Assembly: GCA_964057225.1 (NCBI GenBank)
Contig: OZ059899.1
Location: 7,502,001-7,566,000 of the forward strand
Reading direction: 5' to 3'
DNA: 64,000 nt
Origin: Auanema rhodensis
Taxonomy: Eukaryota > Animalia > Nematoda
Shown: piece after piece, positions 561-30,376 of the stretch
How the letters are laid out: every line of letters starts with the position of its first letter
Numbering within the stretch: the first letter of the stretch is position 1
Position numbers and translations under genes: made by a program
The notes under the pieces: generated by a model
Databases searched by the model: none
Seen by the model: only the letters and a program-made list of their open reading frames with translations
What the model was told of the DNA's origin: nothing

Positions 561-3500
561 TTACGGTTTTAATTTTGGATCTTTTTCCTGAAACAATAAA
601 TACAAATAAAGAAATATTATGTTTTAATATTTTTATAGAGAATGTACCGACTGCCTTCCTAAAACTTTTTGAACCAACTCTTCTTGACTATTTTTATTAT
701 GGAAATCTGAGACAATCACGTTGTGATCCGCCGGAATACCGAAATCCATATTACCATCTATAATAATGATAATATATATATACATGTATTAACTTATTTA
801 TAAACTAACTGTTAATATTTACTCCAATTACTTGATCAAACAGTGTCATATTCAATTTGGGTTTATGGGTCTCTTCAGAATCCCTTAATTATAAAATAAG
901 TAAATTATTGAAGAACATTCCGATATACCCTCCATAAAACAAAATCAAACAAGTATTCTTTATTCCATCCATAAAAGTAGTTTCGTTCAAATCTTCAATA
1001 AGGCTGAAACAAAAAAATTAAATGTTTTTAGTAATGATGTAAGAAAAATCAGCTTGAATATTAAATTTGAAAAAAAACCAAAACTTACTCTTCTGGATCA
1101 CTCTCAAAGGAAAAACCAGAATGATATAAGTTATCTAAGTCATAATTAAAAACATTCTGAGGATATGTTTCTATGTATTGAGTGGAAAACAACACGACAT
1201 TTCCAAATGCTTGTGGATAGGCTTTGAAGATTACATCTTGGCTCTTGTATAGTTCATCTGTAACATTCTTCACAAATTGTAGTTCATCCTGAAAATCATA
1301 AATATAGTTAAAAAACTTTGTTTTTTACATTTTACATTATACATATTAGAATTAGGATAAGAATAGTCTAATACTATTAAACAATTTTTTTCTGATGGAG
1401 CAGCAGCAGTAGTAGCAGTGACTGTAGTAGAATCAGATGCTGGTGTTACAGTAGTTGGAGCTTCAGTAGTTGACATTGGTTGTTCACTAGTTGTTGGAGC
1501 TTCAGTAGTGGACGTTGGCTGTTCACTAGTTGTTGGAGCTTCAGTAGTGGACGTTGGCTGTTCACTAGTGGTTGGAGCTTCAGTAGTTGACATTGCTTGT
1601 TCGCTAGTTGTTGGAGCTTCAGTAGTGGACCTTGGCTGTTCGGGCTGCTTAAGTTTTAATTTTGGATCTTTTTCCTGAAACAATAAATACAAATAAAGAA
1701 ATATTATGTTTTAATATTTTTATAGAGAATGTACCGACTGCCTTCCTAAAACTTTTTGAACCAACTCTTCTTGACTATTTTTATTATGGAAATCTGAGAC
1801 AATCACGTTGTGATCCGCCGGAATACCGAAATCCATATTACCATCTATAATAATGATAATATATATATACATGTATTAACTTATTTATAAACTAACTGTT
1901 AATATTTACTCCAATTACTTGATCAAACAGTGTCATATTCAATTTGGGTTTATGGGTCTCTTCAGAATCCCTTAATTATAAAATAAGTAAATTATTGAAG
2001 AACATTCCGATATACCCTCCATAAAACAAAATCAAACAAGTATTCTTTATTCCATCCATAAAAGTAGTTTCGTTCAAATCTTCAATAAGGCTGAAACAAA
2101 AAAATTAAATGTTTTTAGTAATGATGTAAGAAAAATCAGCTTGAATATTAAATTTGAAAAAAAACCAAAACTTACTCTTCTGGATCACTATCAGAGAAAA
2201 AACCAGAATGATATAAGTTATCTAAGTCATAATTAAAAACATTCTGAGGATATGTTTCTATGTATTGAGTGGAAAACAACACGACATTTCCAAATGCTTG
2301 TGGATAGGCTTTGAAGATTACATCTTGGCTCTTGTAGAGTTCATCTGTAACATTCTTCACAAATTGCTTTTCATCCTGAAAATCATAAATATAGTTAAAA
2401 AACTTTGTTTTTTACATTTTACATTATACAAATTAGCATTAGGATAAGAATAGTCTAATACTATTAAACAATTTTTTTCTGATGGAGCAGCAGCAGTAGT
2501 AGCAGTGACTGTAGTCGAATCAGATGCTGTTGTTACTGTTGTTGGAGCAGCAGTAGTAGCAGTGACTGTAGTCGAATCAGATGCTGTTGTTACTGTTGTT
2601 GGAGCAGCAGTAGTAGCAGTGACTGTAGTCGAATCAGATGCTGGTGTTACAGTAGTTGGAGCAGCAGTAGTAGCAGTGACTGTAGTCGAATCAGATGCTG
2701 GTGTTACAGTAGTTGGAGCAGCAGTAGTAGCAGTGACTGTAGTCGAATCAGATGCTGGTGTTACAGTAGTTGGAGCAGCAGTAGTAGCAGTGACTGTAGT
2801 CGAATCAGATGCTGGTGTTACAGTAGTTGGAGCAGCAGTAGTAGCAGTGACTGTAGTCGAATCAGATGCTGGTGTTACAGTAGTTGGAGCAGCAGTAGTA
2901 GCAGTGACTGTAGTCGAATCAGATGCTGGTGTTACAGTAGTTGGAGCAGCAGTAGTAGCAGTGACTGTAGTCGAATCAGATGCTGGTGTTACAGTAGTTG
3001 GAGCAGCAGTAGTAGCAGTGACTGTAGTCGAATCAGATGCTGGTGTTACAGTAGTTGGAGCAGCAGTAGTAGCAGTGACTGTAGTCGAATCAGATGCTGG
3101 TGTTACAGTAGTTGGAGCAGCAGTAGTAGCAGTGACTGTAGTCGAATCAGATGCTGTTGTTACTGTAGTTGGAGCAGCAGTAGTAGCAGTGACTGTAGAC
3201 GAATCAGATGCTGTTGTTACAGTAATTGGAGTAGCAGTGACTGTAGTCGAATCAGATGCTGGTGTTACAGTAGTTGGAGCAGCAGTAGTAGCAGTGACTG
3301 TAGTCGAATCAGATGCTGTTGTTATAGTAGTTGGAGCAGCAGTAGTAGCAGTGACTGTAGTCGAATCAGATGCTGTTGTTACAGTAGTTGGAGCAGCAGT
3401 AGTAGCAGTGACTGTAGACGAATCAGATGCTGTTGTTACAGTAATTGGAGTAGCAGTGACTGTAGTCGAATCAGATGCTGTTGTTACAGTAGTTGGAGCA

Positions 3501-6500
3501 GCAGTAGTAGCAGTGACTGTAGTCGAATCAGATGCTGTTGTTACTGTTGTTGGAGCAGCAGTAGTAGCAGTGACTGTAGTCGAATCAGATGCTGTTGTTA
3601 CAGTAGTTGGAGCAGCAGTAGTAGCAGTGACTGTAGTCGAATCAGATGCTATTGTTACAGTAGTTGGAGTAGCAGTGACTGTAGTCGAATCAGATGCTGT
3701 TGTTACAGTAGTTGGAGCAGCAGTAGTAGCAGTGACTGTAGTCGAATCAGATGCTGTTGTTACAGTAGTTGGAGCAGCAGTAGTAGCAGTGACTGTAGTC
3801 GAATCAGATGCTGTTGTTACAGTAGTTGGAGCAGCAGTAGTAGCAGTGACTGTAGTCGAATCAGATGCTGTTGTTACAGTAGTTGGAGTAGCAGTGACTG
3901 TAGTCGAATCAGATGCTGTTGTTACAGTAGTTGGAGCAGCAGTAGTAGCAGTGACTGTAGTCGAATCAGATGCTGTTGTTACAGTAGTTGGAGCAGCAGT
4001 AGTAGCAGTGACTGTAGTCGAATCAGATGCTGGTGTTATAGTAGTTGGAGCAGCAGTAGTAGCAGTGACTGTAGTCGAATCAGATGCTGGTGTTACAGTA
4101 GTTGGAGCAGCAGTAGTAGCAGTGACTGTAGTCAAATCAGATGCTGTTGTTACAGTAGTTGGAGCAGCAGTAGTAGCAGTGACTGTAGTCGAATCAGATG
4201 CTGTTGTTACAGTAGTTGGAGCAGCAGTAGTAGCAGTGACTGTAGTCGAATCAGATGCTGTTGTTACTGTTGTTGGAGCAGCAGTAGTAGCAGTGACTGT
4301 AGTCGAATCAGATGCTGTTGTTACTGTTGTTGGAGCAGCAGTAGTAGCAGTGACTGTAGTCGAATCAGATGCTGGTGTTATAGTAGTTGGAGCAGCAGTA
4401 GTAGCAGTGACTGTAGTCGAATCAGATGCTGTTGTTATAGTAGTTGGAGCAGCAGTAGTAGCAGTGACTGTAGTCGAATCAGATGCTGGTGTTATAGTAG
4501 TTGGAGCAGCAGTAGTAGCAGTGACTGTAGTCGAATCAGATGCTGTTGTTATAGTAGTTGGAGCAGCAGTAGTAGCAGTGACTGTAGTCGAATCAGATGC
4601 TGTTGTTACTGTTGTTGGAGCAGCAGTAGTAGCAGTGACTGTAGTCGAATCAGATGCTGGTGTTATAGTAGTTGGAGCAGCAGTAGTAGCAGTGACTGTA
4701 GTCGAATCAGATGCTGTTGTTACTGTTGTTGGAGCAGCAGTAGTAGCAGTGACTGTAGTCGAATCAGATGCTGTTGTTACTGTTGTTGGAGCAGCAGTAG
4801 TAGCAGTGACTGTAGTCGAATCAGATGCTGGTGTTATAGTAGTTGGAGCAGCAGTAGTAGCAGTGACTGTAGTCGAATCAGATGCTGTTGTTATAGTAGT
4901 TGGAGCAGCAGTAGTAGCAGTGACTGTAGTCGAATCAGATGCTGTTGTTACAGTAGTTGGAGCAGCAGTAGTAGCAGTGACTGTAGTCGAATCAGATGCT
5001 GTTGTTACAGTAGTTGGAGCAGCAGTAGTAGCAGTGACTGTAGTCGAATCAGATGCTGTTGTTACAGTAGTTGGAGCAGCAGTAGTAGCAGTGACTGTAG
5101 TCGAATCAGATGCTGTTGTTACAGTAGTTGGAGCAGCAGTAGTAGCAGTGACTGTAGTCGAATCAGATGCTGGTGTTACAGTAGTTGGAGCAGCAGTAGT
5201 AGCAGTGACTGTAGTCGAATCAGATGCTGTTGTTACAGTAGTTGGAGCAGCAGTAGTAGCAGTGACTGTAGTCGAATCAGATGCTGGTGTTATAGTAGTT
5301 GGAGCAGTAGTAGTAACGGTAGTGATTGGAATTGAGGTAGTACCCGTAGAATGAGCTAAGTAAATATATATTCAAAGTGTAATATATAATATGCTTACTT
5401 ATTGTTCCAGCTATAGCTGCTGAAATATTGTTGTTGTCAGATCCATAAATAATTACTGATTGTTGTGTCATATTATATATAACTTTAAGCTCGGCTGAAG
5501 TTTTCTTCAAACTAGCTAAAATTGGAGACTTGAGTGATTCCAAATGGATTCCAACATAGAAATTGTCATTTTTCATGCTTAAAAAGAAACATTTATGATT
5601 GAACCAAGTTTTGAATCATACTCACTCTGTGGTTATACATGGGACGAAATAGAGTAATTGATCGTTAGTCAACAAATTTGTAGAATAAGATTCAAAAAAC
5701 CTTAAACAAGTATAAGAATATGTTATTAGAAACGAAATATACCGTGTTTGATTAATCCTCTCTGATTTTGCAGTTTTCAATGTATTTCTTATTAATTGAA
5801 TCATATCATTTTTATTTTGAATATTTGAGAATGTAGTTTGAGTAGAATATGTTCCTAAACGATACATTATTGTTGGATCATTGATATCTTGAAGAGTTTG
5901 TATAGCAAGGTCACGATTCTAAAATATATTTTCTTTACTTTATATACGTAATTGATTTTCTAACCGTTGTCATCGAACAATCATCTATTCCAGAATTCCT
6001 CTTTATTCGTTTATTGTTGGAATTGAAACCATCAGAATCTGATATGGCAATTGTAACAACTTTACCTAAAAATTATATGTTAGTTGTTTTCATAAAAGAA
6101 ATATTTAAGAAGATGATATGAATAAATTTATTTTAATTTCTTGTTATATTTCACTTAATTCAATTAAATTTTCTTATTTAAATGTTTAAATATATGGTGG
6201 TTGTTGCATTACAATTCTGCCTTTGCCGGAAAAAAAGCTTCCCTGTTGAATGATATTGAAAATACCCATAGAGCTTTTGAAATGTTTAAAAATCGTTTAG
6301 CAGCCTGATAACAAAACTTTATGCACTTTTTAACCTTAAAAATAACCATACTGTTGCTCACAAGGAAATGCACTTCAAAACAATCTCCAAAAAAATCTTG
6401 ATACTTTCAAGTAGTTCGAGAGTGAAAGATTGGCTTAAGGAATTTCAATAATATATGTTTCATCCACATTACAATTCTGACTAAGCTTCAGGTAATAACT

Positions 6501-7209
6501 TGAAGATTTTCTTTCTATAAAACCAAAAATTGTTTTCGTGGGAAGATTACAACTATTGCTAGAGTAATAGATATAGCAGCAGAACTTTCGATAATAATCG
6601 GGACTGTTCGCAATATGGACTAAACAATGAATCTTATGTCTAACATGTAAATTTTGTTGTTTCGGACAATGCACCGAGAAAATCGACAACTTATTATATG
6701 ATCACAATCATTTTTTTTTAATTAGTTAAATATCATACAATTATCAGTTCAGAAGATAAGAAACAGAAACAGAAGTGATCTCTTTTATTTAACAGGAAAT
6801 GAAAAAAGTTGTAAAAAGAATGTGATCAAGTTAAAAAATATTAAAATATGTTTGATTACAAGATAAAAGCATTTATCCATTAAAAGTTAGTTTGCAACCC
6901 TTTTAATTTTCCAATATGCTTTATAAAATAAACTGATAACTAGTTTATGACACGATTTGGGTGTGCCAGTGCGTTTTAATTCTAATACAATGCTTTGATG
7001 ACTCAATAAATAGCTAAAATTTGAACCAAAAATTTGATTTCTTTTGAAATAAGATAAAATATATTCTTACCACTATCATCATTTTTTATTGTAACTGCGA
7101 CTATTACAATAACTGCTACAAATATTAAAATTATTAGTAATATAGAGAGTAGAATAAAAATCCTCAAGTATTGTTGTTTCTTGGATTTATGTTGTTCTCC
7201 ATCAGACAT
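561..7209 (-). CDS. Type II membrane mucin-like protein ('gene B'): TM anchor, RIKR site, globular domain, 19-aa Thr/Ala/Ser repeat array, two tandem copies of a C-terminal globular domain
   Basis: Spliced by hand: MSDGEQHKSKKQQYLRIFILLSILLIILIFVAVIVIVAVTIKNDDS|GKVVTIAISDSDGFNSNNKRIKRNSGIDDCSMTT|NRDLAIQ...INQTR|FFESYS...LLYFVPCITT|MKNDNF...AIAGTI|THSTGTTS-(repeats)-APSEKNCLIVLDYSYPNANLYN|DEKQFVKN...|...CLILFYGG|...|linker|second copy|EKDPKLKP*. GT-AG introns keep frame. The 3' end is the least certain part. Confidence 0.8.
566..2548. repeat. Tandem segmental duplication, offset 1087 bp (copy 1 ~566-1461, copy 2 ~1653-2548), covering several exons and introns of gene B
   Basis: Direct comparison of the two copies; ORF-track pairs 763/1850 and 1085/2172 differ by exactly 1087. 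Confidence 0.95.
2486..5310 (-). repeat. Coding minisatellite, 57-bp unit (TTVT[T/P]ASDSTTVTATTAAP) with occasional 48-bp variants, about 50 copies
   Basis: Unit read directly (+ strand ...ggagcagcagtagtagcagtgactgtagtcgaatcagatgctg[g/t]tgtta...); minus frame is open throughout. Confidence 0.97.
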
Positions 7210-7663
7210 GACAACCTGTTAGACTTAATTATAAATTATGTTTAATATAGAAACATGAACAAGAGAAAATACTCGAAAAATATTTATAAAACATAGTTAT
7301 ATGTAAAATAAAACATGATATATACAGCTTTTCAAATTTAAAAAAAAATTAACAAGTAGAGCGAAACAATTCCGACAATAACTACAATGAGAAGAGTTTA
7401 AAATGAGAAAAGAAATAATGTTCGTTATGTAGCAAAGAAAGATGAAACGATTACACCCCTTACCGTTATCAGCGTTAATATTGTACGATAAGAAGTTGAA
7501 GAATGCTTAAATATAATATGATACTGAACTTGCATATCTAACATATTCCGGATGAGAAATAGTAACCTGAATTTTAGAAAAAGAAACATTGTTAACAATA
7601 AATATAACACTATGAAATAAAAAGTAATATTAAATACAATATAACAAGCTAATTACTAACCAA

Positions 7664-10600
7664 TCACTTTATCGGTGTTGAAGTTTCTGTGGTGGACATT
7701 GGTTGTTCACTAGTTGTTGGAGCTTCTGTAGTTGACATTGGTAGTTCACTTGTGGATTGAGCTTCAGTAGTTGGCATTGGTTGTTCACTAGTTGTTGGAG
7801 CTTCAGTAGTGGACGTTGGCTGTTCACTAGTGGTTGGAGCTTCAGTTGACATTGGTTGTTCACTAGTTGTTGGAGCTTCAGTAGTAGACGTTGGCTGTTC
7901 ACTTGTGGATTGAGCTTCAGTACTTGACATTGGTTGTTCACTAGTTGTTGGAGCTTCAGTAGTGGACGTTGGCTGTTCACTTGTGGATTGAGCTTCAGTA
8001 GTTGACATTGGTTGTTCACTAGTTGTTGGAGCTTCAGTAGTGGACGTTGGCTGTTCACTAGTGGTTGGAGCTTCAGTTGACATTGGTTGTTCACTAGTTG
8101 TTGGAGCTTCAGTAGTAGACGTTGGCTGTTCACTTGTGGATTGAGCTTCAGTACTTGACATTGGTTGTTCACTAGTTGTTGGAGCTTCAGTAGTGGACGT
8201 TGGCTGTTCACTAGTGGTTGGAGCTTCAGTTGACATTGGTTGTTCACTAGTTGTTGGAGCTTCAGTAGTAGACGTTGGCTGTTCACTTGTGGATTGAGCT
8301 TCAGTAGTTGACATTGGTTGTTCACTAGTTGTTGGAGCTTCAGTAGTAGACGTTGGCTGTTCACTTGTGGCTTGAGCTTCAGTAGTAGACGTTGGCTGTT
8401 CACTAGTTGTTAGAGCTTCAGTAGTTGACATTGGTAGTTCACTAGTTATTGGAGCTTCAGTAGTAGACGTTGGCTGTTCACTTGTGGATTGAGCTTCAGT
8501 ACTTGACATTGGTTGTTCACTAGTTGTTGGAGCTTCAGTAGTGGACGTTGGCTGTTCACTAGTGGTTGGAGCTTCAGTTGACATTGGTTGTTCACTAGTT
8601 GTTGGAGCTTCAGTAGTGGACGTTGGCTGTTCACTTGTGGATTGAGCTTCAGTAGTTGACATTGGTTGTTCACTAGTTGTTGGAGCTTCAGTAGTGGACG
8701 TTGGCTGTTCACTAGTGGTTGGAGCTTCAGTTGACATTGGTTGTTCACTAGTTGTTGGAGCTTCAGTAGTAGACGTTGGCTGTTCACTTGTGGATTGAGC
8801 TTCAGTACTTGACATTGGTTGTTCACTAGTTGTTGGAGCTTCAGTAGTGGACGTTGGCTGTTCACTAGTGGTTGGAGCTTCAGTTGACATTGGTTGTTCA
8901 CTAGTTGTTGGAGCTTCAGTAGTAGACGTTGGCTGTTCACTTGTGGATTGAGCTTCAGTACTTGACATTGGTTGTTCACTAGTTGTTGGAGCTTCAGTAG
9001 TGGACGTTGGCTGTTCACTAGTGGTTGGAGCTTCAGTTGACATTGGTTGTTCACTAGTTGTTGGAGCTTCAGTAGTGGACGTTGGCTGTTCAGTTGTGGA
9101 TTGAGCTTCTGTAGTTGACATTGGTTGTTCACTAGTTATTGGAGCTTCAGTAGTAGACGTTGGCTGTTCACTTGTGGATTGAGCTTCAGTAGTAGACGTT
9201 GGCTGTTCACTTGTGGCTTGAGCTTCAGTAGTTGACATTGGTTGTTCACTAGTTGTTGGAGCTTCAGTAGTAGACGTTGGCTGTTCACTAGTGGTTAGAG
9301 CTTCAGTAGTTGACATTGGTTGTTCACTAGTTGTTGGAGCTTCAGTAGTAGACGTTGGCTGTTCACTAGTGGTTAGAGCTTCAGTAGTTGACATTGGTAG
9401 TTCACTAGTTATTGGAGCTTCAGTAGTAGACGTTGGCTGTTCACTTGTGGATTGAGCTTCAGTAGTTGACATTGGTTGTTCACTAGTTGTTGGAGCTTCA
9501 GTAGTGGATGTTGGCTGTTCACTAGTGGTTGGAGCTTCAGTTGACATTGGTTGTTCACTAGTTATTGGAGCTTCAGTAGTAGACGTTGGCTGTTCACTTG
9601 TGGCTTGAGCTTCAGTAGTTGACATTGGTTGTTCACTAGTTGTTGGAGCTTCAGTAGTAGACGTTGGCTGTTCACTAGTGGTTAGAGCTTCAGTAGTTGA
9701 CATTGGTTGTTCACTAGTTGTTGGAGCTTCAGTAGTAGACGTTGGCTGTTCACTAGTGGTTAGAGCTTCAGTAGTTGACATTGGTAGTTCACTAGTTATT
9801 GGAGCTTCAGTAGTAGACGTTGGCTGTTCACTTGTGGATTGAGCTTCAGTAGTTGACATTGGTTGTTCACTAGTTGTTGGAGCTTCAGTAGTGGATGTTG
9901 GCTGTTCACTAGTGGTTGGAGCTTCAGTTGACATTGGCTGTTCACTAGTTGTTGGAGCTTCAGTAGTAGACGTTGGCTGTTCACTTGTGGCTTGAGCTTC
10001 AGTAGTAGACGTTGGCTGTTCACTAGTTGTTAGAGCTTCAGTAGTTGACATTGGTAGTTCACTAGTTGTTGGAGCTTCTGTAGTGGACGTTGGCTGTTCA
10101 CTAGTGGTTAGAGCTTCAGTTGACATTGGTTGTTCACTAGTTATTGGAGCTTCAGTAGTAGACGTTGGCTGTTCACTTGTGGATTGAGCTTCAGTAGTTG
10201 ACATTGGTTGTTCACTAGTTGTTGGAGCTTCAGTAGTAGACGTTGGCTGTTCACTTGTGGCTTGAGCTTCAGTAGTTGACATTGGTTGTTCACTAGTTAT
10301 TGGAGCTTCAGTAGTAGACGTTGGCTGTTCACTTGTGGATTGAGCTTCAGTAGTTGACATTGGTTGTTCACTAGTTATTGGAGCTTCAGTAGTGGACGTT
10401 GGCTGTTCAGTTGTGGATTGAGCTTCTGTAGTGGACGTTGGTTGTTCACTAGTTATTGGAGCTTCAGTAGTAGACGTTGGCTGTTCACTTGTGGCTTGAG
10501 CTTCAGTAGTAGACGTTGGCTGTTCACTAGTTGTTAGAGCTTCAGTAGTTGACATTGGTAGTTCACTAGTTATTGGAGCTTCAGTAGTGGACGTTGGCTG

Positions 10601-16600: not shown

Positions 16601-19600
16601 TGGCTCTTCACTTGTGGCTTGAGCTTCAGTAGTGGACGTTGGCTGTTCACTAGTGGTTGGAGCTTCAGTAGTTGACATTGGTTGTTCACTAGTTATTGGA
16701 GCTTCAGTAGTAGACGTTGGCTGTTCAGTTGTGTATTGAGCTTCTGTAGTGGACGTTGGTTGTTCACTAGTTGTTGGAGCTTCTGTAGTGGACGTTAGTT
16801 GTTCACTAGTAGTTGGACCTTCAGTAGTAGACGTTGGCTGTTCAGTTGTGTATTGAGCTTCTGTAGTGGACGTTGGTTGTTCACTAGTTGTTGGAGCTTC
16901 TGTAGTGGACGTTAGTTGTTCACTAGTTGTTGGAGCTTCTGTACTGGACGTTAGTTGTTCACTAGTTGTTGGAGCTTCTGTAGTGGACGTTAGTTGTTCA
17001 CTAGTTGTTGGAGCTTGTGTAGTAGACGTTGGCTGTTCACTTGTGGATTGAGCTTCAGTAGTTGACATTGGTTGTTCACTAGTTGTTGGAGCTTCAGTAG
17101 TAGACGTTGGCTGTTCACTTGTGGCTTGAGCTTCAGTAGTAGACGTTGGCTGTTCACTAGTTGTTAGAGCTTCAGTAGTTGACATTGGTTGTTCACTAGT
17201 TGTGGGAGCTTCTGTAGTGGACGTTAGTTGTTCACTACTTGTTGGAGCTTCTGTAGTGGACGTTGGTTGTTCACTAGTTGTTGGAGCTTCTGTAGTGGAC
17301 GTTAGTTGTTCACTAGTTGTTGGAGCTTCTGTAGTGGACGTTAGTTGTTCACTAGTTATTGGAGCTTCAGTAGTAGACGTTGGCTGTTCACTTGTGGATT
17401 GAGCTTCAGTAGTTGACATTGGTTGTTCACTAGTTGTTGGAGCTTTAGTAGTGGACGTTGGCTGTTCACTAGTGGTTGGAGCTTCAGTTGACATTGGTTG
17501 TTCACTAGTTATTGGAGCTTCAGTAGTAGACGTTGGCTGTTCACTTGTGGCTTGAGCTTCAGTAGTAGACGTTGGCTGTTCACTAGTTGTTAGAGCTTCA
17601 GTAGTAGACGTTGGCTGTTCACTAGTTGTTAGAGCTTCAGTAGTTGACATTGGTAGTTCACTAGTTATTGGAGCTTCAGTAGTGGACGTTGGCTGTTCAC
17701 TAGTGGTTGGAGCTTCAGTAGTAGACGTTGGCTCTTCACTTGTGGCTTGAGCATCAGTAGTGGACGTTGGCTGTTCACTAGTGGTTAGAGCTTCAGTAGT
17801 TGACATTGGTAGTTCACTAGTTATTGGAGCTTCAGTAGTGAACGTTGGCTGTTCACTAGTGATTGGAGCTTCAGTAGTGGACGTTGGCTGTTCACTTGTG
17901 GCTTTAGCTTCAGTAGTGGACGTTGGCTGTTCACTAGTGGTTAGAGCTTCAGTAGTTGACATTGGTTGTTCACTAGTTGTTGGAGCTTCAGTAGTTGACA
18001 TTGGTTGTTCACTAGTTGTTGGAGCTTCAGTAGTAGACGTTGGCTGTTCACTTGTGGCTTGAGCTTCAGTAGTTGACATTGGTTGTTCACTAGTTGTTGG
18101 AGCTTCAGTAGTAGACGTTGGCTGTTCACTTGTGGCTTGAGCTTCAGTAGTTGACATTGGTTGTTCACTAGTTGTTGGAGCTTCAGTAGTAGACGTTGGC
18201 TGTTCACTTGTGGCTTGAGCTTCAGTAGTTGACATTGGTTGTTCACTAGTTGTTGGAGCTTCAGTAGTAGACGTTGGCTGTTCACTTGTGGCTTGAGCTT
18301 CAGTAGTAGACGTTGGCTGTTCACTAGTTGTTAGAGCTTCAGTAGTTGACATTGGTTGTTCACTAGTTGTGGGAGCTTCTGTAGTGGACGTTAGTTGTTC
18401 ACTACTTGTTGGAGCTTCTGTAGTGGACGTTGGTTGTTCACTAGTTGTTGGAGCTTCTGTAGTGGACGTTAGTTGTTCACTAGTTGTTGGAGCTTCTGTA
18501 GTGGACGTTAGTTGTTCACTAGTTATTGGAGCTTCAGTAGTAGACGTTGGCTGTTCACTTGTGGATTGAGCTTCAGTAGTTGACATTGGTTGTTCACTAG
18601 TTGTTGGAGCTTTAGTAGTGGACGTTGGCTGTTCACTAGTGGTTGGAGCTTCAGTTGACATTGGTTGTTCACTAGTTATTGGAGCTTCAGTAGTAGACGT
18701 TGGCTGTTCACTTGTGGCTTGAGCTTCAGTAGTAGACGTTGGATGTTCACTAGTTGTTAGAGCTTCAGTAGTAGACGTTGGCTGTTCACTAGTTGTTAGA
18801 GCTTCAGTAGTTGACATTGGTAGTTCACTAGTTATTGGAGCTTCAGTAGTGGACGTTGGCTGTTCACTAGTGGTTGGAGCTTCAGTAGTAGACGTTGGCT
18901 CTTCACTTGTGGCTTGAGCATCAGTAGTGGACGTTGGCTGTTCACTAGTGGTTAGAGCTTCAGTAGTTGACATTGGTAGTTCACTAGTTATTGGAGCTTC
19001 AGTAGTGAACGTTGGCTGTTCACTAGTGATTGGAGCTTCAGTAGTGGACGTTGGCTGTTCACTTGTGGCTTTAGCTTCAGTAGTGGACGTTGGCTGTTCA
19101 CTAGTGGTTAGAGCTTCAGTAGTTGACATTGGTTGTTCACTAGTTGTTGGAGCTTCAGTAGTTGACATTGGTTGTTCACTAGTTGTTGGAGCTTCAGTAG
19201 TAGACGTTGGCTGTTCACTTGTGGCTTGAGCTTCAGTAGTTGACATTGGTTGTTCACTAGTTGTTGGAGCTTCAGTAGTAGACGTTGGCTGTTCACTTGT
19301 GGCTTGAGCTTCAGTAGTTGACATTGGTTGTTCACTAGTTGTTGGAGCTTCAGTAGTAGACGTTGGCTGTTCACTTGTGGCTTGAGCTTCAGTAGTTGAC
19401 ATTGGTTGTTCACTAGTTGTTGGAGCATCAGTAGTGGACGTTGGCTGTTCACTAGTGGTTAGAGCTTCAGTAGTTGACATTGGTTGTTCACTAGTTGTTG
19501 GAGCTTCAGTAGTAGACGTTGGCTGTTCACTTGTGGATTGAGCTTCAGTAGTGGACGTTGGCTCTTCACTTGTGGCTTGAGCTTCAGTAGTGGACGTTGG

Positions 19601-22600
19601 CTGTTCACTTGTGGCTTGAGCTTCAGTAGTGGACGTTGGCTGTTCACTAGTGGTTAGAGCTTCAGTAGTTAACATTGGTTGTTCACTAGTTGTTGGAGCT
19701 TCAGTAGTGGACGTTAGTTGTTCACTAGTTATTGGAGCTTCAGTAGTAGACGTTGGCTGTTCACTTGTGGATTGAGCTTCAGTAGTTGACATTGGTTGTT
19801 CACTAGTTGTTGGAGCTTCAGTAGTAGACGTTGGCTGTTCACTTGTGGATTGAGCTTCAGTAGTGGACGTTGGCTGTTCACTTGTGGCTTGAGCTTCAGT
19901 AGTGGACGTTGGCTGTTCACTAGTGGTTAAAGCTTCAGTAGTTGACATTGGTTGTTCACTAGTTGTTGGAGCTTCAGTAGTAGACGTTGGCTGTTCACTT
20001 GTGGCTTGAGCTTCAGTAGTGGACGTTGGCTCTTCACTTGTGGCTTGAGCTTCAGTAGTGGACGTTGGCTGTTCACTAGTGGTTGGAGCTTCAGAAGTTG
20101 ACAGTGGTTGTTCACTAGTTATTGGAGCTTCAGTAGTAGACGTTGGCTGTTCACTAGTGGTTAGAGCTTCAGTTGACATTGGTTGTTCACTAGTTATTGG
20201 AGCTTCAGTAGTAGACGTTGGCTGTTCACTTGTGGATTGAGCTTCAGTAGTTGACATTGGTTGTTCACTAGTTGTTGGAGCTTCAGTAGTAGACGTTGGC
20301 TCTTCACTTGTGGCTTGAGCTTCAGTAGTAGACGTTGGCTCTTCACTTGTGGCTTGAGCTTCAGTAGTGGACGTTGGCTGTTCACTAGTGGTTGGAGCTT
20401 CAGAAGTTGACAGTGGTTGTTCACTAGTTATTGGAGCTTCAGTAGTAGACGTTGGCTGTTCACTTGTGAATTGAGCTTCAGTTGTTGACATTGGTTGTTC
20501 ACTAGTTGTTGGAGCTTCAGTAGTAGACGTTGGCTGTTCACTTGTGGCTTGAGCTTCAGTAGTTGACATTGGTTGTTCACTAGTTGTTGGATCTTCAGTA
20601 GTAGACGTTGGCTGTTCACTAGTTATTGGAGCTTCAGTAGTGGACGTTGGCTGTTCAGTTGTGGATTGAGCTTCTGTAGTGGACGTTGGTTGTTCACTAG
20701 TTGTTGGAGCTTCTGTAGTAGACGTTGGCTCTTCACTTGTGGCTTGAGCTTCAGTAGTGGACGTTGGCTGTTCACTTGTGGCTTGAGCTTCAGTAGTGGA
20801 CGTTGGCTGTTCACTAGTGGTTAGAGCTTCAGTAGTTGACATTGGTTGTTCACTAGTTGTTGGAGCTTCAGTAGTAGACGTTGGCTGTTCACTGGTGGTT
20901 AGAGCTTCAGTAGTAGACGTTGGCTGTTCACTGGTGGTTAGAGCTTCAGTAGTTGACATTGGTTGTTCACTAGTTGTTGGAGCTTCAGTAGTTGACATTG
21001 GTTGTTCACTAGTTGTTGGAGCTTCAGTAGTAGACGTTGGCTGTTCACTAGTGGTTAGAGCTTCAGTAGTTGACATTGGTTGTTCACTAGTTGTTGGAGC
21101 TTCAGTAGTTGACATTGGTTGTTCACTAGTTGTTGGAGCTTCAGTAGTTGACATTGGTTGTTCACTAGTTGTTGGAGCTTCAGTAGTAGACGTTGGCTGT
21201 TCACTGGTGGTTAGAGCTTCAGTAGTTGACATTGGTTGTTCACTAGTGGTTAGAGCTTCAGTAGTTGACATTGGTTGTTCACTAGTTGTTGGAGCTTCAG
21301 TAGTAGACGTTGGCTGTTCACTAGTGGTTAGAGCTTCAGTAGTTGACATTGGTTGTTCACTAGTTGTTGGAGCTTCAGTAGTTGACATTGGTTGTTCACT
21401 AGTTGTTGGAGCTTCAGTAGTTGACATTGGTTGTTCACTAGTTGTTGGAGCTTCAGTAGTAGACGTTGGCTGTTCACTAGTGGTTAGAGCTTCAGTAGTA
21501 GACGTTGGCTGTTCACTTGTGGCTTGAGCTTCAGTAGTTGACATTGGTTGTTCACTAGTTGTTGGAGCTTCAGTAGTAGACATTGGTTGTTCACTAGTTG
21601 TTGGAGCTTCAGTAGTAGACGTTGGCTGTTCACTAGTTGTTGGAGCTTCAGTAGTGGACGTTGGCTGTTCACTAGTGGTTAGAGCTTCAGTAGTTGACAT
21701 TGGTTGTTCACTAGTTGTTGGAGCTTCAGTAGTAGACGTTGGCTGTTCACTTGTGGCTTGAGCATCAGTAGTGGACGTTGGCTGTTCACTTGTGGCTTGA
21801 GCTTCAGTAGTTGACATTGGTAGTTCACTAGTTATTGGAGCTTCTGTAGTGGACGTTGGCTGTTCACTAGTGATTGGAGCTTCAGTAGTGGACGTTGGCT
21901 GTTCACTTGTGGCTTTAGCTTCAGTAGTGGACGTTGGCTGTTCACTAGTGGTTAGAGCTTCAGTAGTTGACATTGGTTGTTCACTAGTTGTTGGAGCTTC
22001 AGTAGTTGACATTGGTTGTTCACTAGTTGTTGGAGCTTCAGTAGTAGACGTTGGCTGTTCACTTGTGGCTTGAGCTTCAGTAGTTGACATTGGTTGTTCA
22101 CTAGTTGTTGGAGCTTCAGTAGTAGACGTTGGCTGTTCACTTGTGGCTTGAGCTTCAGTAGTTGACATTGGTTGTTCACTAGTTGTTGGAGCTTCAGTAG
22201 TAGACGTTGGCTGTTCACTTGTGGCTTGAGCTTCAGTAGTTGACATTGGTTGTTCACTAGTTGTTGGAGCATCAGTAGTGGACGTTGGCTGTTCACTAGT
22301 GGTTAGAGCTTCAGTAGTTGACATTGGTTGTTCACTAGTTGTTGGAGCTTCAGTAGTAGACGTTGGCTGTTCACTTGTGGATTGAGCTTCAGTAGTGGAC
22401 GTTGGCTCTTCACTTGTGGCTTGAGCTTCAGTAGTGGACGTTGGCTGTTCACTTGTGGCTTGAGCTTCAGTAGTGGACGTTGGCTGTTCACTAGTGGTTA
22501 GAGCTTCAGTAGTTAACATTGGTTGTTCACTAGTTGTTGGAGCTTCAGTAGTGGACGTTAGTTGTTCACTAGTTATTGGAGCTTCAGTAGTAGACGTTGG

Positions 22601-25600
22601 CTGTTCACTTGTGGATTGAGCTTCAGTAGTTGACATTGGTTGTTCACTAGTTGTTGGAGCTTCAGTAGTAGACGTTGGCTGTTCACTTGTGGATTGAGCT
22701 TCAGTAGTGGACGTTGGCTGTTCACTTGTGGCTTGAGCTTCAGTAGTGGACGTTGGCTGTTCACTAGTGGTTAAAGCTTCAGTAGTTGACATTGGTTGTT
22801 CACTAGTTGTTGGAGCTTCAGTAGTAGACGTTGGCTGTTCACTTGTGGCTTGAGCTTCAGTAGTGGACGTTGGCTCTTCACTTGTGGCTTGAGCTTCAGT
22901 AGTGGACGTTGGCTGTTCACTAGTGGTTGGAGCTTCAGAAGTTGACAGTGGTTGTTCACTAGTTATTGGAGCTTCAGTAGTAGACGTTGGCTGTTCACTA
23001 GTGGTTAGAGCTTCAGTTGACATTGGTTGTTCACTAGTTATTGGAGCTTCAGTAGTAGACGTTGGCTGTTCACTTGTGGATTGAGCTTCAGTAGTTGACA
23101 TTGGTTGTTCACTAGTTGTTGGAGCTTCAGTAGTAGACGTTGGCTCTTCACTTGTGGCTTGAGCTTCAGTAGTAGACGTTGGCTCTTCACTTGTGGCTTG
23201 AGCTTCAGTAGTGGACGTTGGCTGTTCACTAGTGGTTGGAGCTTCAGAAGTTGACAGTGGTTGTTCACTAGTTATTGGAGCTTCAGTAGTAGACGTTGGC
23301 TGTTCACTTGTGAATTGAGCTTCAGTTGTTGACATTGGTTGTTCACTAGTTGTTGGAGCTTCAGTAGTAGACGTTGGCTGTTCACTTGTGGCTTGAGCTT
23401 CAGTAGTTGACATTGGTTGTTCACTAGTTGTTGGATCTTCAGTAGTAGACGTTGGCTGTTCACTAGTTATTGGAGCTTCAGTAGTGGACGTTGGCTGTTC
23501 AGTTGTGGATTGAGCTTCTGTAGTGGACGTTGGTTGTTCACTAGTTGTTGGAGCTTCTGTAGTAGACGTTGGCTCTTCACTTGTGGCTTGAGCTTCAGTA
23601 GTGGACGTTGGCTGTTCACTTGTGGCTTGAGCTTCAGTAGTGGACGTTGGCTGTTCACTAGTGGTTAGAGCTTCAGTAGTTGACATTGGTTGTTCACTAG
23701 TTGTTGGAGCTTCAGTAGTAGACGTTGGCTGTTCACTGGTGGTTAGAGCTTCAGTAGTAGACGTTGGCTGTTCACTGGTGGTTAGAGCTTCAGTAGTTGA
23801 CATTGGTTGTTCACTAGTTGTTGGAGCTTCAGTAGTTGACATTGGTTGTTCACTAGTTGTTGGAGCTTCAGTAGTAGACGTTGGCTGTTCACTAGTGGTT
23901 AGAGCTTCAGTAGTTGACATTGGTTGTTCACTAGTTGTTGGAGCTTCAGTAGTTGACATTGGTTGTTCACTAGTTGTTGGAGCTTCAGTAGTTGACATTG
24001 GTTGTTCACTAGTTGTTGGAGCTTCAGTAGTAGACGTTGGCTGTTCACTGGTGGTTAGAGCTTCAGTAGTTGACATTGGTTGTTCACTAGTGGTTAGAGC
24101 TTCAGTAGTTGACATTGGTTGTTCACTAGTTGTTGGAGCTTCAGTAGTAGACGTTGGCTGTTCACTAGTGGTTAGAGCTTCAGTAGTTGACATTGGTTGT
24201 TCACTAGTTGTTGGAGCTTCAGTAGTTGACATTGGTTGTTCACTAGTTGTTGGAGCTTCAGTAGTTGACATTGGTTGTTCACTAGTTGTTGGAGCTTCAG
24301 TAGTAGACGTTGGCTGTTCACTAGTGGTTAGAGCTTCAGTAGTAGACGTTGGCTGTTCACTTGTGGCTTGAGCTTCAGTAGTTGACATTGGTTGTTCACT
24401 AGTTGTTGGAGCTTCAGTAGTAGACATTGGTTGTTCACTAGTTGTTGGAGCTTCAGTAGTAGACGTTGGCTGTTCACTAGTTGTTGGAGCTTCAGTAGTG
24501 GACGTTGGCTGTTCACTAGTGGTTAGAGCTTCAGTAGTTGACATTGGTTGTTCACTAGTTGTTGGAGCTTCAGTAGTAGACGTTGGCTGTTCACTAGTTG
24601 TTGGAGCTTCAGTAGTAGACCTTGGCTGTTCACTTGTGGCTTGAGCTTCAGTAGTTGACATTGGTTGTTCACTAGTTGTTGGAGCTTCTGTAGTGGACGT
24701 TAGTTGTTCACTAGTTGTTGGAGCTTCTGTAGTGGACGTTAGTTGTTCACTAGTTGTTGGAGCTTCTGTAGTGGACGTTAGTTGTTCACTAGTTGTTGGA
24801 GCTTCTGTAGTGGACGTTAGTTGTTCACTAGTTGTTGGAGCTTCTGTAGTGGACGTTAGTTGTTCACTAGTTGTTGGAGCTTCTGTAGTGGACGTTAGTT
24901 GTTCACTAGTTGTTGGAGCTTCTGTAGTGGACGTTAGTTGTTCACTAGTTGTTGGAGCTTCTGTAGTGGACATTAGTGGTTCACTAGTTGTTGGAGCTTC
25001 AGTAGTGGACGTTAGTTGTTCACTAGTTGTTGGAGCTTCTGTAGTGGACGTTAGTTGTTCACTAGTTGTTGGAGCTTCTGTAGTGGACGTTAGTTGTTCA
25101 CTAGTTGTTGGAGCTTCTGTAGTGGACATTAGTTGTTCACTAGTTGTTGGAGCTTCTGTAGTGGACATTAGTGGTTCACTAGTTGTTGGAGCTTCTGTAG
25201 TGGACATTAGTGGTTCACTAGTTGTTGGAGCTTCTGTAGTGGACATTAGTGGTTCACTAGTTGTTGGAGCTTCTGTAGTGGACGTTAGTTGTTCACTAGT
25301 TGTTGGAGCTTCTGTAGTGGACGTTAGTTGTTCACTAGTTGTTGGAGCTTCAGTAGTAGACGTTGGCTGTTCACTAGTTGTTGGAGCTTCAGTAGTGGAC
25401 GTTGGCTGTTCACTAGTGGTTAGAGCTTCAGTAGTTGACATTGGTTGTTCACTAGTGGTTAGAGCTTCAGTAGTAGACGTTGGCTGTTCACTTGTGGCTT
25501 GAGCTTCAGTAGTTGACGTTAGTTGTTCACTTGTGGCTTGAGCTTCAGTAGTTGACATTGGTTGTTCACTAGTTGTTGGAGCTTCTGTAGTGGACGTTAG

Positions 25601-27930
25601 TTGTTCACTAGTTGTTGGAGCTTCTGTAGTGGACATTAGTTGTTCACTAGTTGTTGGAGCTTCTGTAGTGGACATTAGTGGTTCACTAGTTGTTGGAGCT
25701 TCTGTAGTGGACATTAGTGGTTCACTAGTTGTTGGAGCTTCAGTAGTGGACGTTAGTTGTTCACTAGTTGTTGGAGCTTCTGTAGTGGACATTAGTGGTT
25801 CACTAGTTGTTGGAGCTTCTGTAGTGGACGTTAGTTGTTCACTAGTTGTTGGAGCTTCTGTAGTGGACATTAGTGGTTCACTAGTTGTTGGAGCTTCAGT
25901 AGTGGACGTTAGTTGTTCACTAGTAGTTGGACCTTCAGTAGTAGACGTTGGCTCTTCACTTGTGTCTTGAGCTTCAGTAGTTGACGTTAGTTGTTCACTT
26001 GTGGCTTGAGCTTCAGTAGTTGACATTGGTTGTTCACTAGTTGTTGGAGCTTCTGTAGTGGACGTTAGTTGTTCACTAGTTGTTGGAGCTTCTGTAGTGG
26101 ACATTAGTTGTTCACTAGTTGTTGGAGCTTCAGTAGTGGACGTTAGTTGTTCACTAGTTGTTGGAGCTTCTGTAGTGGACATTAGTGGTTCACTAGTTGT
26201 TGGAGCTTCTGTAGTGGACGTTAGTTGTTCACTAGTTGTTGGAGCTTCTGTAGTGGACATTAGTGGTTCACTAGTTGTTGGAGCTTCAGTAGTGGACGTT
26301 AGTTGTTCACTAGTAGTTGGACCTTCAGTAGTAGACGTTGGCTCTTCACTTGTGTCTTGAGCTTCAGTAGTAGACGTTGGCTCTTCACTTGTGTCTTGAG
26401 CTTCAGTAGTGGACGTTGGCTGTTCACTAGTGGTTGGAGCTTCTGTAGTGGACGTTAGTTGTTCACTAGTGGTTGGAGCTTCTGTAGTGGACATTAGTGG
26501 TTCACTAGTTGTTGGAGCTTCAGTAGTGGACGTTAGTTGTTCACTAGTAGTTGGACCTTCAGTAGTAGACGTTGGCTCTTCACTTGTGTCTTGAGCTTCA
26601 GTAGTGGACGTTGGCTGTTCACTAGTGGTTGGAGCTTCTGTAGTGGACGTTAGTTGTTCACTAGTTGTTGGAGTTTCTGTAGTCAAAGTTGATTTTGATG
26701 TCGATGTTGTAATATTATCAGAGCTATCTAAAAATAAACTCAATTCTTTTGTTCTCTAACATGACCTCTTACTTATTATATGAGAAATAACTTGAGATAT
26801 ATTTTGACCTTTACCAACAGAAGTGACTGCATTTTCTGAAATATTATAAAGATTCCGTATTTGTTTTTGCGTTAATTGATCTGATGTTAAGATGGTTTCC
26901 TGTGAACGGAGTAAGCATTTCGATAAAATCTGGTCAAAGTTTTCTAGGTCTTCTTTTTTACTGAAAATAGTCTTATTATGATATCTACGGTATAAACTAA
27001 GACTACCCGGTATAATTTGCAGATGCCATACATGGGATAAAATAAAGAAAATAATTTTTTCTATCAGAATTATCTAAATTGGTTTCATATTTCTCTACAG
27101 CACTGAAATTATGAAATATTTTATAATGATTTACATTTGCTTTTTTTAAGATGAAATTTTATTTTGTTTTATATTATATAGGATTTTTGCTGATTCAGTT
27201 ATAACGATAAAAAAATTTCGCTGGTCATGTTTGAACTATATGAAATTGTGATGCAATATTTCTTATGTGAGAATTATACATTAGTTTGTTTGGTAACACT
27301 ACGAATAAATGAAATTTTCAGTTTTAATAGGAAAGAGAATACAAAATGTCAAAAGAAATTTTAAACGTTTTTTTTACGTTATATAGAAAACTATAAAGAA
27401 AGTTAATTTTTTTTTATTTTGAGACGTTCACCTTTGTTGTGATAAGGATTTTGAATTAGATTGTTGAATGGTTTCAATATACTCAAGTGCTTGCGGTATA
27501 GTTAGTACATCAGTTGCTTCAGCAGTTTCAGAAAAAGTAATAATGGATAAGCTAAAATCATTATCAAGATTTTTTATGATTTCCTTAGCCTCTTTGCTGA
27601 TCTGTACAATATACTTTCAAAATTATAATTTTTACAAAGTAGAACCAACGGTATAGTAACTGCATGACGAAGTATCTCGCTTTTGCCGCAAAGCTTTTGT
27701 TTCATCTACAGTTGGAATAGCTACTGATAGAAGCTTTGTTACAATAGTATTGGTTTGTTTATGTTCTAAATAATTAATATTGATTTAAATATATAAAAAT
27801 ATAATTGTCTGTAAAAATTAATATAATTACTATTAGTTAGTACTATAGCTAAAATAACCGCCACAGCAGCAAGAACCACAACAAAAATTATCAGAACAAG
27901 TAGTGAAAGTACTAAATATGATTTCTTCAT
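7664..27930 (-). CDS. Giant type II membrane mucin-like protein ('gene A'), about 6,600 aa: TM anchor, RQKR site, globular domain, ~6,300-aa Thr/Ser/Glu/Pro repeat region
   Basis: Exon 1 27930-27831 MKKSYLVLSLLVLIIFVVVLAAVAVILAIVLTN; exon 2 27765-27650 ...KLLSVAIPTVDETKALRQKRDTSSCSYYT; exon 3 ISKEAKEII...FSLSIITFSETA...; exon 4 ...NYFLYFIPCMASANYT; exon 5 KKEDLENFDQILSKC...VISHII; giant exon 26727-7664, open throughout (ORF track 6359 aa). Confidence 0.88.
7680..26680 (-). repeat. Coding minisatellite, 39-bp unit (STTEA[PT/QA/QS/LT/PI]TSEQ[P/L][T/M]) with 36-bp variants, roughly 490 copies with higher-order structure
   Basis: Visible directly; copy number estimated as length/39. Confidence 0.98.
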
Positions 27931-28835: not shown

Positions 28836-30376
28836 TTAGCCTATCTTACATGGATCTGGACTGTTAGCTTCATTCTCTACCATCTTTAGTTCTTTCTTTT
28901 TTATTATAGAAGGGGTTGACAGCGGCTTTAAAGTGCAAAAAGTTATCTTTAAATTTTTAGAAACACGCATCACCTAAAGTTACAATCAATGAAATAATGT
29001 AAGTTAAAACTAACTGATCCAGAATTTCCGTCTGATCCGCAATAGTTTGGAGCAGAAAAAATTGTAACTATATGATTATCGAATTCCCATAAATGACCAT
29101 TCTAGTGTTTTTTTTGTATTTTGAAATAGTATAAGTTTAAATATACCGGAACTACTTCATGTGCTCTAACAATCAATTTCAAGCTTAATTTTTCACATAA
29201 TTCTTTTACAGCTCGTTTTCCAAAAATTACAGATGTATATCTAACCTATTGAATAAAAATTAATAGTGTAAATGACAAAATCTAAAATATCATAAACTAT
29301 AACATTACTGAATTGTATGCATATACTGGACAACAAGCATCAGTCGTTGGATCTGACCACATCAAATCTAAAGCAATTCCTTCGTCGCATTCATCAGGGC
29401 CACTAGGTTTCTACAAAATTGGGAAACGAATTTTCAACACATCAAATGTGATTAGAAAACTTTAAGGCTCAACAGACTATCCCATGACTGTATCAGGGGT
29501 GATAAACCACCGTGCATGCATAAAATTGTTTTATCAATTGTAGCACATAGAGGAAAATGATCAAATACCTAGAAAATAGAGTTTTATGTTTGATAACCCT
29601 TTAATACCAACTAACCTCATTGTACTTTTTCCATATATTGCTTGATCGTTTTTCAATTAATTCTTCACGAAAACCATACAATGCATTCATTCGTGAGCAT
29701 TCATGATTTCCACGAATTAAATATATTGAATTAGGATATAGTACTTTATAACAAAGTAATAAAGTTATAACCTTTAAATAGTATAATTAAAAATTAATTT
29801 TTAACTATTAAAAATAATAATATTAACAACTTCTAAAGATAATTTTCCTCTGTCCACATAATCACCTAAGAAAAGTAAAACTGTATTGGGAGGTGTACCA
29901 ACAACGGATAAAAATCTGAAATTTGTCTTTTTCAAGTTTAATGAAAAATCGAAATTAAATGAAAAATAATTCTAGACTGCTAAAAATATTATAAATTTTC
30001 AAATGTATACTTTAACAGATCCAGCAGCTGTCCATGAATATCTCCAAATATAACCAACGGAGCTGTCAAACATAAAGTTGCTGGTTCTAGTTTTAAAACC
30101 GATGTTGCCTTAAAAATACAATATAATAAATTGTCGTTAATTATTGTTTTTATATATGATATAGCTTGTAATTTATTTAAATCTATATTACCTCATTTAG
30201 TATTTGAGATAACTGTTGATCAGTGAATCCACATATATGATAATCAGTTTGTATTCGGCGTATAATTCGTTCAGCCAATATTTTAGTTAGCTATATTACA
30301 ATTCATATAATTATTATAATTTGTTTAATTATTTTACTATTGTTTTATTAGTAGAATAATTAGTAGAAGTATTCAT
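28836..30376 (-). CDS. PP1-like Ser/Thr protein phosphatase catalytic subunit (divergent nematode PPP paralogue)
   Basis: Spliced exons give all PPP motifs: FGDIHGQ, FLGDYVDRG, IRGNHE, CMHGGLSP, DLMWSDP, IVRAHEVV, TIFSAPNYCG; ends ...ANSPDPCKIG*. The first exon (MNTSTNYSTNKTI) is less certain. Confidence 0.92.

Follow-up and report, generated by a model that had tools for sequence, protein, structure and literature searches.

Tandem pair of putative type II mucins with a shared head and a predicted convertase site in the nematode Auanema rhodensis

Results

Two mucin-type genes lie in tandem on the minus strand

Here we describe two neighbouring genes, termed A and B, in a stretch of 64,000 nucleotides from the nematode Auanema rhodensis (NCBI GenBank assembly GCA_964057225.1, contig OZ059899.1, positions 7,502,001 to 7,566,000 of the forward strand), which is called the window in the following and to which all positions refer. 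Two tandem arrays with units of 39 bp and 57 bp dominate the initial 28 kb of the window, and both differ from the AT-rich background in GC content and in GC skew. The 39-bp array forms one open frame of 6359 codons on the minus strand, and the 57-bp array is likewise open on this strand. A preceding sequence-only reading of the region had proposed a tandem pair of unrecognised type II mucins that share a head, carry different repeat arrays and are apparently released by furin. For the present analysis the flanks of the arrays were read and the exons were chained by script from the sequence. As judged from the resulting models, A and B are old paralogues of the mucin type that lie in tandem on the minus strand. 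A tblastn search did not reveal any further paralogue within the window.

Gene A (7664..27930, minus strand) is modelled with six exons (27930-27831, 27765-27650, 27601-27432, 27102-27007, 26960-26773 and 26727-7664) that encode a protein of 6577 amino acids (aa) and end with a TGA stop codon at 7664-7666. The array of this gene is housed in a single exon of about 19 kb, in which the frame is open over 19,064 nt. The short form of gene B (1720..7209, minus strand) comprises 10 exons and encodes 1358 aa. Its head and array are encoded by exons 7209-7071, 6065-5965, 5918-5743, 5700-5626, 5577-5399 and 5355-2423, which are followed by the four tail exons 2375-2176, 2090-2016, 1970-1897 and 1844-1720 with an open frame and GT/AG boundaries. 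All modelled introns of both genes start with GT and end in AG. The phases of the first five introns are 1,0,2,2,1 in A and in B, and the rebuilt models thereby reproduce what had been reported from the sequence. Since the heads are homologous by common descent, as described below, the shared phases do not constitute independent evidence.

Furthermore, RNA data were available from four small sequencing runs of one study, each with 21% of the words of the stretch 5356-7663; the assembled contigs carry no expression levels. Each of the four runs yielded one contig of 753-776 nt that matches exons 1-5 of gene B exactly. These contigs skip positions 5578-5625, 5701-5742, 5919-5964 and 6066-7070, all of which are GT..AG on the minus strand. 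They extend 93 letters past position 5399 and into the array exon, the beginning of which (5326-5355) corresponds to the 30 letters seen of this extension. Transcription of gene B is thus established, and spliced RNA confirms its first five exons as well as their link to exon 6, which carries the repeats, in agreement with the model. The splicing of the N-terminal exons to the repeat exon, on which the idea of an anchored mucin had depended, is in this way demonstrated for gene B. The contigs start 8 nt before the ATG, right at an AG (7210-7217); in two of them 5 additional letters without a match stand upstream of this point. The AG may be a trans-splice acceptor; because the contigs hold only 5 unmatched letters, we do not claim a trans-spliced leader on gene B.

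Both genes encode long Thr/Ser-rich repeat stalks

Array A (7676-26683, minus strand) consists of 489.5 copies of the 39-bp unit. At the protein level, 437 units of 13 aa and 27 units of 12 aa were counted, the commonest being TSEQPTSTTEAPT. The single-unit length variants counted all amount to whole codons and are in frame, and a few longer pieces are units left joined by the splitter. Array B (2489-5315, minus strand) comprises 50.2 copies of the 57-bp unit, which encodes 19 aa with ASDSTTVTATTAAPTTVTT as the commonest version. The stalks are about 6350 aa long in A and about 955 aa long in B. Over its 6353 aa array A is composed of 32% Thr, 16% Ser, 16% Glu, 11% Pro and 9% Gln, with Thr and Ser together accounting for 48%. 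For the 955 aa of array B the corresponding values are 45% Thr, 20% Ala, 11% Ser, 9.5% Val and 7% Pro (Thr plus Ser, 56%). Gly makes up 0.1% or less of either array, and Gly-X-Y repeats do not occur. Both arrays are long tandem repeats rich in Thr, Ser and Pro, as is characteristic of mucins. The two genes indeed carry different units, of 13 aa and 19 aa, as had been noticed from the sequence; the description of the arrays as Glu/Gln/Pro-rich versus Ala/Val-rich has to be amended, as both are primarily rich in Thr and Ser.

Array A contains long exact duplications of 2743 bp (19009-21751, lag 2844) and 1958 bp (13381-15338, lag 1941). In view of these kilobase-long exact duplications parts of the array appear to be young, and the length seen in the assembly is possibly inexact. 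Either the array has undergone higher-order expansion very recently, or the duplications indicate that the copy number in the assembly is uncertain.

The two proteins share an N-terminal anchor, a single R-x-K-R motif and a diverged head

In the predicted protein A a hydrophobic segment (aa 5-33; 27832..27918, minus strand) follows directly after the residues MKKS, and in protein B the equivalent segment (aa 15-41; 7087..7167, minus strand) is preceded by a basic N-terminus of 14 residues. Kyte-Doolittle windows of 19 residues with values above 1.6 are confined to residues 1-36 in A and 11-46 in B, and the same analysis of the whole proteins gave no C-terminal or other hydrophobic segment in either of them. 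The N-terminal placement of the membrane anchor and the lack of a C-terminal one are thus as first described. The segment contains about 27 hydrophobic residues in each protein. In A this appears too long for a cleaved signal peptide.

About 27 residues past the anchor both proteins contain an R-x-K-R motif, RQKR in A (aa 60-63; 27677..27688, minus strand), followed by DTSSC, and RIKR in B (aa 66-69; 5998..6009, minus strand), followed by NSGIDDC. Each is the sole RxxR sequence of its protein, and the two occupy the same aligned position in the heads. R-x-[KR]-R arises in 1-2% of the composition-preserving shuffles of each ectodomain. A Cys is found 5-7 residues after the motif in both proteins. 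The P1' residue is Asp in A and Asn in B, and no further basic residues extend the site in A.

Additional motifs are shared along the head. A strand-like motif before the basic site reads KLLSVAI in A (27716..27736, minus strand) and is aligned with KVVTIAI in B (6043..6063, minus strand). The top conserved window between the heads is LYF[IV]PC, represented by LYFIPC in A (27030..27047, minus strand) and LYFVPC in B (5637..5654, minus strand); it is preceded by Y-x-TNL in both heads, and near the head end both have an N-I-S sequon. Over the whole proteins there are three Cys in A and four in B. When the heads were compared without the anchor, the Smith-Waterman score was 118 as against 37.5 +/- 6.9 for shuffled sequences (z = 11.7), and none of 500 shuffles reached it. 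Their alignment covers 175 columns in colinear order and shows 25% identity. Thus, the two heads are homologous. The architecture of anchor, K-x-[V/L]-x-[I/V]AI strand, R-x-K-R followed by a Cys, and LYF[I/V]PC, as well as the strong divergence of the heads that carry it, was found as the sequence-only reading had put it.

Gene B carries a duplicated tail unit

In gene A the stop codon follows directly on the array (…TSTPIK, TGA), and a tail domain is absent. In gene B the array is followed by a tail domain of about 177 aa (tail domain 1; 1720..2482, minus strand), which starts with SEKNCLIVLDYSYPN in the final stretch of the array exon and continues through four small exons. Its intron phases are 0,2,2,1, and it contains two Cys (aa 1186 and 1286). 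The tail unit of gene B is part of a 1087-bp tandem duplication in which 566-1462 corresponds to 1653-2549 with 13 mismatches (about 99% identity). All 13 mismatches are situated in coding exons, where they form small clusters (1103/1107/1110, 1280-1282, 1344/1350 and 1429-1453), whereas the four introns and the 3' flank are free of mismatches. The two copies differ at six amino acids (tail positions 16, 18, 23 and 80-82).

A possible read-on of gene B (561..1674, minus strand) would make use of this second copy. It is predicted to proceed from a weak donor, GTACAT at 1734, to an exon at 1674-1336 that encodes EKDPKLK, five 13-aa units of the A type and about 1.5 units of the B type. The predicted exons of tail copy 2 are 1288-1089, 1003-929, 883-810 and 757-648, followed by a mini-exon at 587-561 (minus strand). 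If the donor at 1734 is used, the frame of the long form stays open throughout and ends at 561, giving a protein of 1628 aa. Within the linker 1336-1674 between the tail units, the five A-type units precede the 19-aa type, and the switch takes place at the APTT core shared by both. The presence of A-type units in gene B points to an exchange of repeat DNA between the neighbouring genes, despite heads that are only 25% identical.

The tail introns with phases 0,2,2 are placed equivalently to head introns 2-4 (2176-2423 versus 5626-5965), and exon 4 in the head of B and exon 8 in the tail are both 75 nt long. This hints that head and tail could be old copies of one domain. No relation between the sequences of heads and tails was detected with hhalign (P = 0.54) or in Smith-Waterman comparisons (z = 0.7 and 2.0).

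Search for the family and fold of the head

The fold and family searches were run on single exons or pieces rather than on whole spliced domains. A Pfam search with ten exon pieces of 31-66 aa gave nothing meaningful and no VWA match up to an E value of 10; a SEA match was likewise not found, the power of the search being low for such short pieces. In the ESM Atlas two pieces gave no usable match. One of them (5626-5918) spans intron 3 of gene B; as the 42 nt of this intron are free of stop codons, the piece included 14 intron-encoded residues. Sequence searches of the PDB with pieces and with an exon-3 profile returned chance-level matches only, and searches for protein homologues with the start and the end of the gene B array exon found no relatives. 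Within these limited piecewise searches no characterised family was matched, in line with the designation of the pair as unrecognised.

Since the heads and the tails of both genes had been described as degenerate vWA/Rossmann folds without an intact DxSxS metal ion-dependent adhesion site (MIDAS), they were compared with a profile of von Willebrand factor A (vWA) domains. A homologue search with E. coli YfbK (Pfam VWA, E = 4e-22) gave only near-identical E. coli sequences, and a diverse set was then taken from plasmid records. The final alignment consists of 11 bacterial or archaeal sequences, namely YfbK and ten plasmid-borne homologues with 25-54% identity. In local hhalign mode the heads matched this profile with a score of 23.1 (P = 0.0076, probability 5%), and none of 300 column-shuffled head alignments reached this score (mean 12.1, SD 2.3, maximum 22.8). 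The match places head residues 40-91 (SKEAKEIIKNLDNDFSLSIITFSETAE…) on helix 1 through strand 3 of the vWA domain; its first residues, directly behind R-x-K-R, take the position of helix 1. When extended at low stringency the alignment remains colinear and puts KLLSVAI on the first vWA strand, although this extension carries no confidence. In global mode the alignment of heads and profile fails. For the tails the comparison gave P = 0.33.

In its size of about 180 aa and its apparent alternation of hydrophobic strands and amphipathic helices the head is similar to a vWA domain. It differs from it in that the heads have no DxSxS...T...D metal site, the pieces have no Pfam match and the tails remain unmatched. 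An intact DxSxS MIDAS is absent; the position after strand 1 reads PTVDE in A, SDSDG in B and DYSYP in the tails. Many vWA domains are without a MIDAS, and its absence does not exclude a vWA fold for this reason. A vWA/Rossmann-like reading is therefore suggestive for the heads only: of the original proposal the missing MIDAS and a weak match of the heads stand, and for the tails this comparison gave no match.

Other genes in the window

Exons of a PP1-type Ser/Thr phosphatase with the motifs GDIHGQ and GDYVDRG are located directly upstream of gene A (about 29000-30100, minus strand). Further away, an exon at 48754-49173 on the plus strand encodes a CoA-binding domain (Pfam PF02629, E = 8e-6) and probably belongs to a gene of the succinyl-CoA ligase or ATP-citrate lyase type.

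Discussion

A proposed collagen-style route for the mucin pair

The interpretation that we prefer, and to which we would give roughly an even chance of being right, is that A and B follow a collagen-style route with type II insertion, O-glycosylation of the stalk, a convertase cut after RxKR and release of head and stalk. Both products would be type II membrane proteins in which a short intracellular N-terminus is followed by one signal-anchor helix, by a globular head of about 190 residues and by a very long Thr/Ser stalk, to which the product of gene B would add one or two globular tail domains. Their composition and the luminal side on which they would lie in a type II protein suggest heavy O-glycosylation of the stalks in the Golgi. 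A convertase of the kexin/furin type (BLI-4 or KPC-1 class) would then cut after R-x-K-R late in the secretory pathway. This cut would part the anchor from the head and stalk, and the mucin would leave the cell for the apical matrix, a lumen or the surface coat. Two Cys are conserved, one after the site, which is Cys68 in A and Cys76 in B, and one in LYF[IV]PC, which is Cys153 in A and Cys160 in B; they probably form a disulfide within the released head. At the level of the genes, the repeat arrays would turn over fast and swap units between A and B, with the head retaining a small set of motifs.

Several observations weigh against this interpretation. The charges on either side of the anchor of gene A are about equal, so that its topology is assigned chiefly from the length of the hydrophobic segment and by analogy with B. 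In the four sequencing runs, for which the stretch 5356-7663 was covered, no contig was found over 7281-7663, just downstream of the stop codon of gene A. A profile of exon 5 built from A and B and searched with HMMER against 1.84 billion representative proteins found no relatives, the only hit being one spurious repeat protein, P0001. As this profile would score genes A and B themselves at 122 bits, neither they nor recognisable kin are contained in the protein library; with its 63 columns it is blind to distant relatives, and the result is weak evidence for an orphan, lineage-restricted family. Finally, the K-x-[VL]-x-[IV]-A-I strand before the site is among the best-conserved windows of the head. 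Such conservation is unexpected for a leftover stub, so that the site may lie inside the fold. If the strand belongs to the fold, cleavage alone would not free the protein.

The last of these points leads to a different outcome of the same cut, which we consider distinctly unlikely. If R-x-K-R lies in a loop of the head fold between the first strand (K-x-V-x-IAI) and the first helix, the strand that bears the anchor would stay in the sheet after cleavage, and the product would be a two-chain surface mucin that is shed only under force or unfolding. This would follow the logic of the membrane mucins with a SEA domain, with a convertase in place of autoproteolysis. Besides the conservation of the strand, it is favoured by the local vWA match, which starts at helix 1 right after the site, and by the low-confidence extension with KLLSVAI on strand 1; a hydrophobic strand followed by an Asp/Ser-rich loop is, moreover, the pattern of vWA strand 1 as generally known for this fold. 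The vWA assignment on which it draws is weak, however, given a local P of 0.008, no global alignment and no Pfam or PDB match on the pieces. Slightly more improbable still is the full version, in which the site is situated within a MIDAS-less, disulfide-stapled vWA-like head, cleavage creates a two-chain non-covalent domain as an enzyme-made type II counterpart of the SEA 'mechanical fuse', and A and B are the first named candidates for surface-coat mucins. Were such a SEA-like fuse real, a glycan brush of 6000 residues could be shed under force without tearing of the membrane.

It is also conceivable, if unlikely, that no cut takes place and that A and B are permanent type II membrane mucins in the glycocalyx of an epithelium or gland, with the motif kept for a role in structure or charge. 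Cleavage of A and B is predicted from the conserved RxKR motif, which is the only evidence for it, its P1' residues are Asp and Asn, the site in A lacks additional basic residues, and the motif, should it be located within the fold, might be buried. Against permanent anchoring stand the occurrence of a single RxxR in 6577 and 1358 residues, its identical aligned position in heads of such low identity and the functional cleavage of the same anchor-plus-RxxR layout in nematode collagens (PMC13160090). A further explanation would place the cause in the DNA itself: gene A or the second tail of gene B could be a by-product of duplication or long-repeat assembly, with array lengths that are not real and a locus that is partly non-working. 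This would fit the exact duplications of 2743 bp and 1958 bp in array A, the 1087-bp tail duplication of about 99% identity, the abrupt end of gene A without a tail domain and the missing contig downstream of its stop codon. On the other hand, the frame of 19,064 nt is open and the counted single-unit length variants are in frame, all six exons of A have proper splice sites, the head of A retains the shared motifs, and gene B is transcribed and correctly spliced. We regard a partly non-working locus as very improbable.

Implications

Mucins are thought to form much of the nematode surface coat, by which pathogen adhesion and, in parasites, host recognition are determined. If the collagen-style route applies to A and B, the secretion route by type II anchor and RxxR would serve more than collagens, and the two genes would be concrete candidates for the surface-coat mucins, the specific identity of which is still open according to a review (PMC11304992). 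Furthermore, the pair illustrates fast change, with heads of 25% identity, unit lengths that are unrelated, kilobase-scale exact duplications in one array and units of one gene inside the other. The suggestion that a conserved anchor-cleave-head chassis carries an exchangeable stalk agrees with the diverged heads, the unrelated units and the A-type units in gene B; it is drawn from two genes only.

Comparison with known systems

Among nematode and vertebrate proteins, the closest parallels in layout are the C. elegans cuticle collagens SQT-3, DPY-7 and DPY-8 and the vertebrate MACIT collagens. As predicted for A and B, these proteins combine a short cytosolic N-terminus and a single N-terminal anchor helix with an RxxR convertase site tens of residues past the anchor and Cys residues soon thereafter (PMC10538796, PMC13160090, PMC11304992); in the cuticle collagens Cys clusters follow soon after the RxxR site (PMC11304992). 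Both groups also have a long repetitive extracellular part, which in the collagens is destined for the apical matrix. The secretion of the type II cuticle collagens of C. elegans depends on BLI-4, and mutants with AxxA in place of RxxR fail to be secreted (PMC10538796, PMC13160090). In contrast to the collagens, A and B have no Gly-X-Y, a Thr/Ser mucin stalk together with a head of about 190 aa, and a conserved strand between anchor and site. Cleavage is required for secretion in the collagens and is predicted for A and B. A and B are not collagens, and the likeness is one of predicted mechanism only.

The vertebrate SEA membrane mucins MUC1, MUC3, MUC12, MUC13, MUC16 and MUC17 are type I proteins with a C-terminal anchor that cleave themselves at G/SVVV within the SEA domain. 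As is generally known, they combine a giant tandem-repeat stalk bearing O-glycans with a small globular domain that has a membrane-near cleavage site, and in these respects A and B would be similar to them. The anchor of A and B is N-terminal, however, their putative site is a convertase motif, and the exon pieces gave no SEA match.

The secreted mucins of nematodes share with A and B their richness in Ser and Thr. They include Toxocara TES-120 and MUC-1 to MUC-5 as well as C. elegans DPY-6, OSM-8, LET-653 and PLG-1, mucin-type proteins of the surface coat, the precuticle or secretions (PMC9477421, PMC11304992). End domains are known from some of them, namely a cysteine cradle in DPY-6 and PAN and ZP domains in LET-653 (PMC11304992). 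A and B, by comparison, have an N-terminal anchor and an orphan head, and with three and four Cys, respectively, they lack the six-Cys SXC/ShK modules of the Toxocara proteins. The Toxocara mucins are signal-peptide proteins in which such modules are present. When the literature was searched for nematode mucin-like proteins of the type II transmembrane kind, collagen and precuticle papers were the only ones returned. Overall, the layout of an anchor plus RxxR is already known from the collagens; what appears to be new in A and B is a mucin cargo, together with an orphan head, on a putative chassis of this collagen-style anchor-and-cut kind.

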